Shown: positions 1,091-17,100 of the stretch, piece after piece
Layout of the letters: each line of letters opens with the position of its first letter
Position numbering within the stretch: position 1 is the stretch's first letter
Origin: Pocillopora damicornis
Lineage: Eukaryota
DNA length: 64,000 nucleotides
Direction of reading: 5' to 3'
NCBI RefSeq assembly: GCF_003704095.1
Contig: NW_020843826.1
Span: 1 to 64,000 of the forward strand
Made by a program: the position numbers and the translations under genes
Notes under the pieces: model-generated
Seen by the model: the letters and a program-made list of their open reading frames with translations, nothing else
Told to the model about the DNA's origin: nothing
The model's database searches: none

Positions 1091-1798
1091 GTTTTAACTG
1101 AATTACATGACAGTACACATTTTATGTAGATTCTTCTCGAAACTATACTATGAAAGGATGTAAACTTCCAAACTTTAAACTTCTATCTAAACTTCCAATA
1201 GCCATCAGCCATTTAAAAGGTGTTCGAACGAAAATATACGAAATAGTCACCGATCTGGACAGACGTAATAAATTCGCGCTGGAAAAACAAGGATTTTATT
1301 TGCAATTGATGTAATCGATTTAGCCGTACGTGACTCGGCAGTAGTTGTTTACGTGTGTAAATATGAAAATATAATTAATTAGCCGTAAAAGCATGTACTG
1401 AAATAAGAGCAATTTTATAGCTGTTTACACTAATTAGCTAACCAGAAGTCGAGCGAATTTCTGTACAGATGCAGCGGGCTGCTTTCGGTTCACTTTTTTT
1501 TTCAAGCCTATATAAGGGAATACTGCGATTCAATGATCCTTCAGGGGCCTTCTGTTTACCTGCGGTCAAATAACTGACAGTCCTATTAATTTATTGCCTA
1601 CAATTGACTTGCCCGCGGCACTTTTCTTGTATTCGCAAGAACATCTGCATTTAACTTAGTGGATACCGGTGAAAAACGATCTGCAAAACATAAGCCGATT
1701 CTGAGGCACCGACTGTTAACTATTACCGACCGGCAGTCCTGTAGATTTCAACTCTTGTGGTAATATAGAAGGAAATTGTTCACATCAAACTAAACGAA

Positions 1799-2651
1799 AT
1801 GAGTGGGCAAAATCTGACAGTTTCATGTTCGGAAGGTTCACTGGGGAATTTACACCTGCAATTGACATTTCTGTTGGTTTTAAATATTTTCCTCGCCATT
1901 GTAACCATCTTGGGGAACAAGCTGATTCTTGTTGCTCTACACCATGAGTCTTCCCTTCATCCGCCGTCCAAACTCTTGCTTCGTGGTCTGGCCACCACTG
2001 ATCTTTGCGTCGGACTAATCTCCCAGCCTGTTTGTGTTGCCTTTTGGGTCTCAATTGTAGTCAAAAACTGGACCATTTGTCGATACTCGAGAATGTTGCG
2101 TTTTATCCTGGGTTACCTTCTAGGTTCTGTGTCTTTGTTGACGTTGACTGCAATCAGTGTTGATCGACTACTCGCTTTGTTATTAGGGTTGCGATACAGA
2201 CAGGTTGTAACCTTAAAGCGAACATACTTGATTTTAGCTGTCATTTGGGTAATTTCAACTTTCGCTGCGGTAATCTCACTTTGGAACGACCTTATCACAA
2301 CATGGTATGGCTACATTGGAATATCACTGTGTTTAGTTATCTCATCGTTTTCGTACTCAATCATTTTCTGGAAACTCCGCCAACATCAAACTCAATCGCA
2401 TGTACAGACAAATGCGGAGACAAGTCCACTGAACGTCACGCGATATAAAAGGGCAGTCACTAGTGCGTTGTGGCTGCAGTTGGCTTTAATAACTTGCTAT
2501 CTACCATATGAAATTACCGATATTATATACAATCTGAAAGATCTCACCCCATCAGTTTTTCTCGCTGCTCAATGTGGGATCATTTTAATCTACTTAAATT
2601 CAGCACTGAATCCCATTCTTTATTGCTGGAAGATCGCTGAGGTGAGACAAG
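1799..2651 (+). CDS. Intronless rhodopsin-family (class A) orphan GPCR, melanocortin/adenosine-receptor-like; C-terminus lost in N-gap
   Basis: Seven hydrophobic segments with GN (TM1), LAxxD (TM2), SVDRL (DRY variant), CYLP (TM6) and NSALNPILYCW (NPxxY); short N-terminus with an NLT sequon. Confidence 0.92.
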
Positions 2652-14162: not shown

Positions 14163-17100
14163 CTACTGTGTGGCAGTTTGGTGAGGATGTCCATATGCAG
14201 CCCCATACTGCTGATACCACTGACTATAGCTGTATGCATTCTGAAAGATAGAGAAACAATGTTTTAAATTCACCCTTAAATCATTAAAGTTTTTTTTTCC
14301 TAAGCTCAGTGTAACCATACAAGTTCCTGAGGGCAGCAAAGATTTAGGAAGTAAAGAGCTTTTGCAAAGATGTGAAAGCCATGAAGGGAAGGACACAGGC
14401 TTTCAGCCAGGATTTGATAAGTGGCCGTCCGTGAATTGATGCTACCCGTTTTAAAATCAAATTAAACTGTCTTGTGAAATGCATTACCAAAAGAATAACA
14501 AAAAAAAATCTTTGATGTAAGATCAACTGTCAGTACATCTGCTTCATATCTGCCCATAACAAGAACAGGTTTCCTCAAAACAGAATGGTACAATTGCATG
14601 TGCTATTGGCAACAGGGAACGAGCAAACAATCATAGATCAGACAGTTCACTAGCAAAGTTGCCACCAGTTCACCTCCAACTTATTGACAACCTACCGGCT
14701 GTGCAGCTGAGTAGGCTGCCCACTGGCTCTGTAAGGGTGTGGAATAGTTATAAGCAGATGCCGCAGCAGAGTAGGCTGCTGCTGATGGATATGACGCATC
14801 GTATGTTTCTGCTCCTGTCAGTGCAGTGCTGGTAGCATGTTGACTATTTTCCACTATTCCATCTTCTGTTTTTGATACTTTGGATTTGATGTCTGAACTA
14901 CTAGAAAGGATAAAAGACCTTTTAACAGAATTCTGAAGTGCACCACAGTTTATGCTGAATAAAGTAATATACACAACATTAAGGAATACAATAGAAGTTC
15001 ACTTTTGACAATTTTTTACCATTAAGAAGATACTTATCGCAGATAGCATAGGATTCCCTTGCAAGTAACAACAAAGAAATGAAATTTTGCATAGTGCATT
15101 TTCTGTTGGCAACAGGGAACGAGTGAATTGTCATGGAATTGACGCATCCACTAGCTAAAGGTTGCCCCACTCCTCCACCATTAAGTTAGCTTTCATTATC
15201 TTGCAGCCTGTACTATGACATTTCAGTGACAGTTCTCGTTTTAAAGAAATTCTCACATCTCTCTGTTGTGATATCTCACTTGAAAAATTTTGAAATGCAT
15301 TTCTTTAAAGCAATTACTTCTTACCCATCTCCCTCTTGTGACCTTTTACTGCCAGTCAATGGGATCAAGGAAGATTTTCCTTTATAAAGTCTAGCATGAT
15401 TTTCCTGAGCAGCCATTATTTTGGTAATGTCAGCACTGAAATCTTCAAGAAATTCAACTTGTCTTTGAGAGAAACCTTGTTTGACTTCTGTGTTCAGCTC
15501 ACTGTCTCTCACCAAATCAAAGACTTCTAGAACCTTTTCTTCTTTCAATGGAAATGAAGAAAGCTCTACATCCAAAAGCTGAAGATACAACCTCTTGTTA
15601 TCCTAGAGAGGAAAAAAATTCAATGTTATATAAAAAAAGTGCAACAGATAAATGATTTGACTTCATCAAAGGCACTTTATTTAATGCTATTGTGGAAATG
15701 TCCAAAGTGTCCTTAATGCCACACCAACACTGATATGACAAAAAAATTAGAGTGTCAAGAGAATAAATAACTGGTACAGATTGATTTTCATCCACTCTTT
15801 TCATCCTTCTTGAAATGATACATAGAGTGTTTGTAAATACCTTATCTTTTTCAAGGGCAACCTTCAAGACCTCTCTTGCTTTCTCCACATTACCCATGAC
15901 CTAATGAGAAAAAAAAAGAGAACACTCAGGGGAGCAGACACAAGAACAAAGACAAGCAACACTAATTGAAGAGGGTATGAAACTCAATTCCAGCAACAAT
16001 ACTCAGTCCAAATATCTCATCTACATTGCATAATACAAGATTAAGTCAAGGTCTATAGGTGATGTAAACCTTTTTAAATTAGCATTCATCATTAGATTTT
16101 GAACTACTGATCACAGGCAAACCATTAACCCTTTACACCCTAAAGTCATTATGCATATTCTCCATACTGTTCTTTACATATTTCCTACGGTGCTGACAAG
16201 GAGAAATTGTCAACCGATCAAAAGCTTCTTTTGTGGGGTATGATTTTAGTCATCCTCATAACCTTAATATATAATGCTAGTCACTCTTCGGGTTTAAAGA
16301 GTTAAGACAAACAACTTTAGAAAAACGTTTCAAATTTTTAAACCCATGATCTGCCTAGATACTATAAGAATCAATTTATAGCATTCAACAGAATTTCCTT
16401 ATGGAACAAGATAACAACCCTTAAGCTGAAAAGTTCTTCTATCCTAATAACATTTAACATTGCAAGAAAGAGTTGCATGTTATTACTCTTTGTGAGGTTA
16501 GAGGGTTAAAAAGAACCCTTCTAAACACAAGTTGGCCAAACACAGAATTCTTCTCTTACCTTTGCTAAAAATCGGGAGTATCTAATAGCAAAAAATGTTG
16601 CTAACTCCTGGTCACTAGTCTCATTCATGGTCTCTTCATAGAGAGTACAAGTAACTTCAAAGTTGTCCCTCCGTCTTTCCAGGTTTACTCTCTTTAGCTT
16701 CACTATTATTATACCAGGAACACCCTTGTCTAACTCAGCCAAAATCTCTGATGCCTTGGCAGCATTTCCTTAAAAAAAAAGATGATAAATTAGTACCAAC
16801 CATCCCTTTGCCTATATGAGACTAATATCATAACTTTGCCAAAAAATTAATTGAGGCACTTTTTAATCTACCTTGTATAATGCATAATAGGTAGATTTAA
16901 AGATTGATGGTAAAATGATCTGTTAAAGATGTCTCAATTCGTATGCAATGTAACACACACGAAGAAAAAAAGATTGAAAATTTTGGACTTGAAATTAGAT
17001 AGGACTCCAAGTATCTGTAGCTTTCTTGAGCAGTTTTGATCACACCATGAGATTCTTATACTAAATTATTTCTTCAGGGTTCAATATACACATGCCATAC

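Follow-up and report, generated by a model that had tools for sequence, protein, structure and literature searches.

Two candidate paralogous box H/ACA snoRNA genes in the last two PRPF39 introns of Pocillopora damicornis, with a 5' pocket predicted to guide the 28S pseudouridine equivalent to yeast Psi2944

What explains the presence, in both of the final introns of a coral PRPF39 gene, of a hairpin with the same lower stem and the same unpaired strand, complementary to 28S ribosomal RNA (rRNA)? The question is raised by 64,000 nucleotides (nt) of Pocillopora damicornis DNA (RefSeq assembly GCF_003704095.1, contig NW_020843826.1, positions 1 to 64,000), the whole of which we call the window and to which all unlabelled coordinates refer. 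Our answer, to which we assign a probability of about 0.82, is that the two elements, copies A and B, are paralogous genes for box H/ACA small nucleolar RNAs (snoRNAs) whose 5' pocket is predicted from sequence to guide the 28S pseudouridine equivalent to yeast Psi2944. We favor this reading because the geometry of both copies is canonical, because conservation and covariation extend across seven loci, and because alignments of the introns stop at the predicted ends of the RNAs.

The host is a PRPF39-like gene on the minus strand, recognized from HAT-repeat exons seen as open reading frames (ORFs) with homologues named pre-mRNA-processing factor 39; a single HAT-exon-bearing ORF of the window served as the protein query. 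Spliced RNA contigs fix both introns and place both elements on the host sense strand, as the initial annotation had proposed.

14241-14695, minus strand: last PRPF39 intron, host of copy B (455 nt, GT..AG; spliced contigs in three RNA runs)
14898-15324, minus strand: penultimate PRPF39 intron, host of copy A (GT..AG; spliced contigs in three RNA runs)
14696-14897, minus strand: penultimate coding exon, which separates the host introns of copies A and B (spliced contigs)
14163-14240, minus strand: coding part of the last exon, 25 residues and then the stop codon (14165-14163)

Both copies follow one layout: a hairpin, an H box, a second hairpin, a terminal ACA or AUA, and 3 nt more. The parts of copy A, in RNA order, are these.

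15032-15166, minus strand: copy A, whole predicted H/ACA RNA of 135 nt in the penultimate intron, with a hairpin-hinge-hairpin-tail fold
15108-15166, minus strand: 5' hairpin, with its upper stem region at 15152-15122
15166-15161 and 15113-15108, minus strand: lower stem GGCAAC/GUUGCC
15160-15153, minus strand: 5' pocket strand CUUUAGCU
within 15152-15122, minus strand: upper stem AGUGGAU/AUUCACU, 7 base pairs (bp)
15121-15114, minus strand: 3' pocket strand CGUUCCCU
15106-15101, minus strand: H box ACAGAA, of the form ANANNA
15038-15100, minus strand: 3' hairpin, with lower stem UGCA/UGCG, inner stem GCA/UGC and an upper stem of about 10 bp, as drawn in a suboptimal fold
15037-15035, minus strand: terminal box AUA (ACA in orthologues), followed by a 3-nt tail at 15034-15032

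Those of copy B correspond.

14525-14663, minus strand: copy B, whole predicted H/ACA RNA of 139 nt in the last intron, starting 32 nt past the 5' splice site
14608-14663, minus strand: 5' hairpin
14663-14658 and 14613-14608, minus strand: lower stem GGCAAC/GUUGCC
14657-14652, minus strand: 5' pocket strand UUUGCU, 2 nt shorter than that of copy A
within the 5' hairpin, minus strand: upper stem AGUGAAC/GUUUGCU, 7 bp
14621-14614, minus strand: 3' pocket strand CGUUCCCU, identical to that of copy A
14606-14601, minus strand: H box AUAGCA
14531-14600, minus strand: 3' hairpin, with stems GUAC/GUAC and UCUGUUUU/GAAGCAGA and apical stem CUGUUC/GGGCAG
14530-14528, minus strand: ACA box, followed by a 3-nt tail at 14527-14525; invariant in four related runs

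A short apical stem sits above the upper stem in both copies, a single A separates the lower stem from the H box, whose first base lies 15 nt past the upper stem (8 nt of pocket, 6 of stem and 1 more). H/ACA guides place the top of the pocket 14-16 nt upstream of box H or ACA. Copies A and B thus both show the two-hairpin architecture, the ANANNA hinge and the pocket spacing that define the H/ACA class. The identical lower stem and 3' pocket, the diverged yet pairing upper stems and the ANANNA box 15 nt further on are all as first described; the lengths originally given, ~137-141 nt, were close, though measurement from GGCAAC yields 135 and 139 nt.

Two other ways of setting the boundaries were rejected. 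Taking the conserved hairpin as the 3' hairpin, with the ACA lying inside ACAGAA or AUAGCA, fails because copy B, so near the 5' splice site, has no room upstream, and because within the genus variants occur upstream of copy A and interspecies alignments extend downstream, not upstream. For copy B, the minimum-free-energy fold uses an alternative ACA at 14518-14516; it was set aside because related runs read AAA or GCA there, whereas 14530-14528 is invariant. Variants downstream of copy B hit both bases required for this alternative box.

What, then, would the pocket bind? The 3' pocket strand CGUUCCCU is the exact complement of AGGGAACG in 28S rRNA. By script, the copy A pocket pairs over 8+7 bp with AGGGAACG-UG-AGCUGGG, leaving the U and G free, its 5' strand contributing four Watson-Crick and three G-U pairs with AGCUGGG. 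Copy B pairs over 8+3 contiguous bp with the same 28S motif around UG and, in our reading, reaches 8+6 bp only with one rRNA U bulged. The proposal that both pockets pair on either side of a free UG therefore holds for the two copies alike, with the reservation that copy B, its 5' strand 2 nt shorter, is weaker 3' of the target.

The target stretch reads AUAGGGAACGUGAGCUGGGUUUAGAC in both human 28S and yeast 25S rRNA, the target U standing in the 28S context GGGAACG-U-GAGCUGGG, and the motif expected of coral 28S is AGGGAACGUGAGCUGGG. The pairing is computed from the human and yeast motif because the assembly has no 28S sequence over the target. The uridine is yeast Psi2944 and human U4521 (4491 in the old numbering). 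Primer extension with carbodiimide (CMC) has shown that yeast snR37 guides Psi2944 (2026 preprint), and human U4521, its equivalent, has SNORA10 as predicted guide; the target originally named agrees with this literature. As an observation in its own right, the only sizeable nuclear-type large-subunit (LSU) match in the assembly under the LSU model is a decayed fragment with internal deletions at G000:C3123:14998-15959 (L004 at about 1490-2460, minus strand), which stops directly after the A-loop GGATTGTTCACCCA, short of the guide-binding site by 9 nt; no part of the assembly supplies the 3' end of 28S.

Is the element peculiar to this gene? A search of the genome (234.35 Mb, 4393 contigs) by exact pattern and by R1, a covariance model built from the two window 5' modules, revealed just two sites, copy A (99.6 bits) and copy B (86.6 bits). 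With only two genome copies, the element is not a dispersed repeat. Beyond the genome, metagenome contigs scanned for the common 3' arm and the start of the H box yielded one true homologue, L019, and further loci were obtained as the DNA around exon-sized matches to the HAT-exon ORF, scanned with R1.

L019: 1 copy; carries the orthologous PRPF39 last exon
L024: 2 copies; exon identity to the window 89%
L025: 4 copies; exon identity to the window 93%
L027: 4 copies; exon identity to the window 82%
L026: 3 copies; exon identity to the window 72%
L028: 2 copies; exon identity to the window 75%

Conservation in orthologous introns, which the initial annotation had named as a check, was thereby confirmed by 16 more copies in six other coral or cnidarian loci, and all 18 copies over the seven loci lie in PRPF39 introns on the sense strand. 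R1 found no copy within 10 kilobases of PRPF39 in two further loci, L029 (60% exon identity) and L030 (44%). The orthologous last exon is present in L024, L026, L027 and L028 as well as in L019, and L024, L025, L026 and L027 repeat the arrangement of the window, one copy lying between an upstream exon and the penultimate exon and another between the penultimate and last exons. Extra copies occupy two more introns in L025 and L027. The description of the elements as twins is thus accurate for the window but understates the family, which comprises 1-4 copies over up to four PRPF39 introns. The window pair belongs to a birth-and-death family of 1-4 paralogues in the PRPF39 introns of stony corals and some distant relatives.

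Across these copies, the lower stem is invariant (18/18) and the 3' guide strand identical in all but two (16/18). The 5' strand CUUUAGCU is found in A-type copies and in most copies of the more distant loci L026 and L028, and a shortened 5' strand marks the last-intron copies of five species, as UUUGCU in the window and as CUUGCU or CUUUGCU in L019, L024, L025 and L027. In the 18 sequences, six pairs of the upper stem carry changes on both sides, in 20 cells of the alignment, a figure that none of 500 shuffles reached; upper-stem cells are paired in 91% of cases, a share that drops to 22-57% if the partners are shifted along the alignment. Twelve measured copies span 131-140 nt and have two hairpins each, with ANANNA one nt past the lower stem in 11 of them, and in most copies the conserved block ends 3 nt past the ACA.

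The introns themselves mark out the same unit. When the window introns were compared with the other loci by interspecies BLAST, only RNA-sized segments aligned, their ends no more than 7 nt from the predicted RNA ends. In the penultimate intron, positions 159-286 are the sole part alignable to L025, copy A being predicted at 159-293; in the last intron, positions 30-168 align to L025:20312-20451, copy B being predicted at 33-171. Within the genus, contigs from four runs (three coded organisms and a marine metagenome) revealed 24 variant sites over both introns, of which only 2 fall inside the two predicted RNAs, whose share of the intron sequence is 31% (binomial P = 0.009). A block of 160 nt at copy A (15012-15171) is free of variants in the four runs, with 11 variant sites elsewhere in that intron, and the AUA box is invariant. 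Copy B has two internal variant sites, 14545 and 14569, both in its 3' half, with six more in the 21 nt just downstream.

A different picture emerges for the 3' hairpins. The fold drawn for the copy A 3' hairpin agrees with the consensus of three orthologues or paralogues, in which there is no conserved guide pocket. For B-type copies, a consensus fold of five sequences includes four pairs with compensatory double changes. A scan of partial 18S and 28S fragments for a second target of the 3' hairpins gave only weak GU-rich matches. The suggestion that these hairpins had diverged to new targets found no support, their pockets being small and not conserved between species. They appear to guide no second modification and are most likely structural modules, providing a second protein-binding unit and the ACA or AUA end signal. 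All four runs differ from the window at 14569 and at 15237, where the reference carries a minority or private allele; the common allele at 14569, a U in the RNA, provides one more U-A pair below the apical stem of the copy B 3' hairpin.

A third class of paralogue, with no counterpart in the window, occupies the intron upstream of the PRPF39 HAT exon at L025:9524-9659 and about L027:8714-8850. It retains the same lower stem and H box and has, in both species, the 3' guide strand CAGUCCCU and CCA in place of ACA. The scan of the same rRNA fragments returned only weak GU-rich matches for the CAGUCCCU variant. Either retargeting of the guide or decay of a copy common to both species could account for this class.

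How might such RNAs be made and used? Sequence, geometry, intron position, conservation and covariation are shown above; processing, protein binding and the modification itself we infer. By analogy with the intronic H/ACA snoRNAs of other animals, exonucleases would trim the PRPF39 introns after splicing and so free the RNAs, which would be assembled into particles with dyskerin/Cbf5, Nop10, Nhp2 and Gar1. The 5' hairpin would be the working guide, with CGUUCCCU pairing to AGGGAACG of 28S rRNA and the 5' strand to AGCUGGG, so that the U and G left free where the upper stem begins, 15 nt ahead of the H box, would be presented as the site for the pseudouridine synthase. Copy B probably serves the site of copy A as well, as a redundant guide of lesser strength.

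Several points weigh against this account. No Rfam match at gathering was found in the whole window (cmscan, 4227 families), and pattern searches of the 234-Mb assembly did not find the target motif at up to 1-3 mismatches, the sequence just downstream being absent as well. The RNA contigs, mostly from polyA- or oligo-dT-selected libraries, show the unspliced introns at low depth; no stable RNA of ~135 nt is seen among them, depth in such libraries being uninformative for small RNAs. A literature search turned up no cnidarian pseudouridine map and no systematic H/ACA annotation. Within the RNAs, the terminal box of copy A is AUA, not ACA; the 5' guide strand of copy B is shortened; and the pockets of the 3' hairpins are small, asymmetric internal loops whose sequences differ between species. 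The first base of the B-type box also varies, being ACA in three copies, UCA in one (L019) and CCA in three (L027:13172, L025:9522 and L027:8712). Together, the altered boxes and changed guide strands point to turnover among redundant paralogues; some family members may be decaying, and either copy A or copy B could be in the course of being lost.

The alternative that survives best takes up this last point: that only one window copy is a working guide, the other drifting toward a pseudogene, either A by way of its AUA box or B by way of its truncated 5' strand. Birth and death within the family, with 1-4 copies per species, would fit such a course, as would copies elsewhere with altered guide strands (CUACCGCU at L027:11862; CAGUCCCU at L025:9522 and L027:8712) or with UCA and CCA boxes. 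Yet the exact 3' guide strand, the lower stem and the H box are retained in both copies, and the 160-nt variant-free block at copy A argues for constraint there. Suspicion might then fall on copy B, whose pairing is only 8+3 contiguous bp and whose 3' half has two variants within the genus where copy A has none; but its canonical ACA is invariant in the genus, and the shortened B-type 5' strand is kept in the last-intron copies of five species with no further decay. We consider it unlikely that only one of the two copies works.

More speculative is a reading of the family as a whole. The anthozoan PRPF39 introns might be an old, turning-over nursery of H/ACA paralogues that clamp the same 8-nt stretch of 28S rRNA beside the A site, in which B-type copies with a short arm and an NCA box, and the CAGUCCCU lineage, would be non-modifying pre-60S chaperones or guides to new targets and not decaying copies. 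We hold this to be improbable; if true, it would echo the dual catalytic and scaffolding role of yeast snR37.

A related and even more doubtful proposition is that the RNAs bind the 28S segment chiefly as folding chaperones or scaffolds of the pre-60S particle and not as modification guides. The snR37 preprint reports a structural role at this very site that is independent of pseudouridylation, although that scaffold role needs extra helices together with Upa1-Upa2/Rbp95, and the coral RNAs are minimal H/ACA RNAs of 131-140 nt without extensions. Retention of multiple copies in which an 8-nt arm stays invariant while the second arm and the ACA box vary is what selection for binding over catalysis might leave behind; the pocket geometry is nonetheless exactly as catalysis requires. 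Finally, that the elements are some other conserved intronic structure (a splicing regulator, a microRNA precursor or a mobile-element remnant) would accord with the lack of an Rfam match and of direct evidence of processed RNA in the contigs, but is very improbable given two genome copies only, a conservation that is greatest in the unpaired pocket strands and H box with no 22-nt duplex, a pocket complementary to a known pseudouridine site at the correct spacing, and a conserved block of 131-140 nt that ends 3 nt past the ACA in most copies.

The paralogous H/ACA guides that we favor sit in a gene with some features of its own. The penultimate intron has an alternative acceptor 3 nt away (giving 14901-15324); the paired acceptors at 14897-14901 on the minus strand, each deeply covered in two RNA runs, produce skips of 427 and 424 nt. 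This is NAGNAG-type alternative splicing, by which one codon is gained or lost. A Claudin_TMEM179-179B (PF26158) gene, encoded on the other strand, adjoins the 5' end of PRPF39 at L024:839-1096 and L025:3036-3311; with a TMEM179-like cluster beside PRPF39 in the window too, the neighborhood is conserved. Near-perfect palindromic hairpins in PRPF39 introns at L025:11143-11250 and L025:20014-20072 give weak, below-threshold scores against the unrelated microRNA families mir-1422 and mir-BART21 on both strands; small transposons are their probable source, as inverted repeats.

The snoRNA pair is uncatalogued in databases, even if the kind of gene is ordinary and its job an expected one. Its interest lies in offering a concrete predicted guide in cnidarians for one of the few pseudouridines common to yeast and human ribosomes at the peptidyl-transferase center, and a covariance model with which to annotate coral genomes could be built from the alignment of the 18 copies. 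Beyond this value for annotation and for testing in cnidarians, the biology is ordinary and not surprising.

How do these RNAs compare with guides already known? The Rfam scan that had been named as a check matched no family. On the snoRNA region no SNORA family appeared at E<=10, and RF00264 (SNORA64/SNORA10; gathering score 35 bits) gave nothing at gathering in the window, nothing on the region at E<=10 and nothing genome-wide at E<=1. Four related loci likewise matched no Rfam family at E<=1, with plant snoR144 (RF02412) below threshold. This was the only snoRNA family to appear, at 14.5 bits for copy A and 28.9 bits for L026:9121 against a gathering score of 100. The coral RNAs resemble snoR144 in the GGCAAC/GUUGCC lower stem and in overall layout, but the consensus pocket strands of snoR144 are of the UUUUUCCC type and hence address another target; judged by sequence, the resemblance is probably coincidental.

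Yeast snR37 belongs to the same RNA class and shares the target uridine predicted here, Psi2944; no sequence homology was detected between it and the coral RNAs. At nearly 400 nt, snR37 is much longer, and it is independently transcribed. Its extra helices recruit Upa1-Upa2 and Rbp95, whereas the coral RNAs are minimal, at 135-139 nt, and intronic. Human SNORA10 (ACA10) stands closer in form, being an intronic H/ACA RNA of similar size and the predicted guide for U4521, but it also guides 18S-210, and no second guide is evident in the coral RNAs. Its host gene is RPS2 and thus differs from the coral PRPF39.

Another functional counterpart is SNORA63, a guide for the same 28S site in vertebrates. 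A study of Xenopus and other vertebrates describes it as carrying the evolutionarily conserved antisense element for 28S-Psi4491; in several vertebrates, according to that study, SNORA10 is lost or retargeted and the pseudouridine nevertheless persists. Nothing in the coral 3' hairpins visibly corresponds to the second function of SNORA63 (28S-4390). The term snR37/SNORA10-type, applied to the pair at the outset, serves well as a functional label; as a statement of kinship it does not, for no Rfam family matches, SNORA64/SNORA10 included, and SNORA63 is the guide named as conserved. The coral RNAs are thus predicted functional analogues of snR37, SNORA10 and SNORA63, homology not being demonstrated by sequence.

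PRPF39 is a snoRNA host in human as well, its intron 10 containing SNORD127; this, however, belongs to the box C/D class and guides a methylation, that of 18S Gm1447, so that neither class nor target is shared. Guide function at the Psi2944 site would, on our reading, have been kept across eukaryotes by unrelated-looking RNAs in different host genes. Such unrelated-looking guides at one site accord with the idea that evolution preserves the guide function more than the snoRNA gene that provides it.

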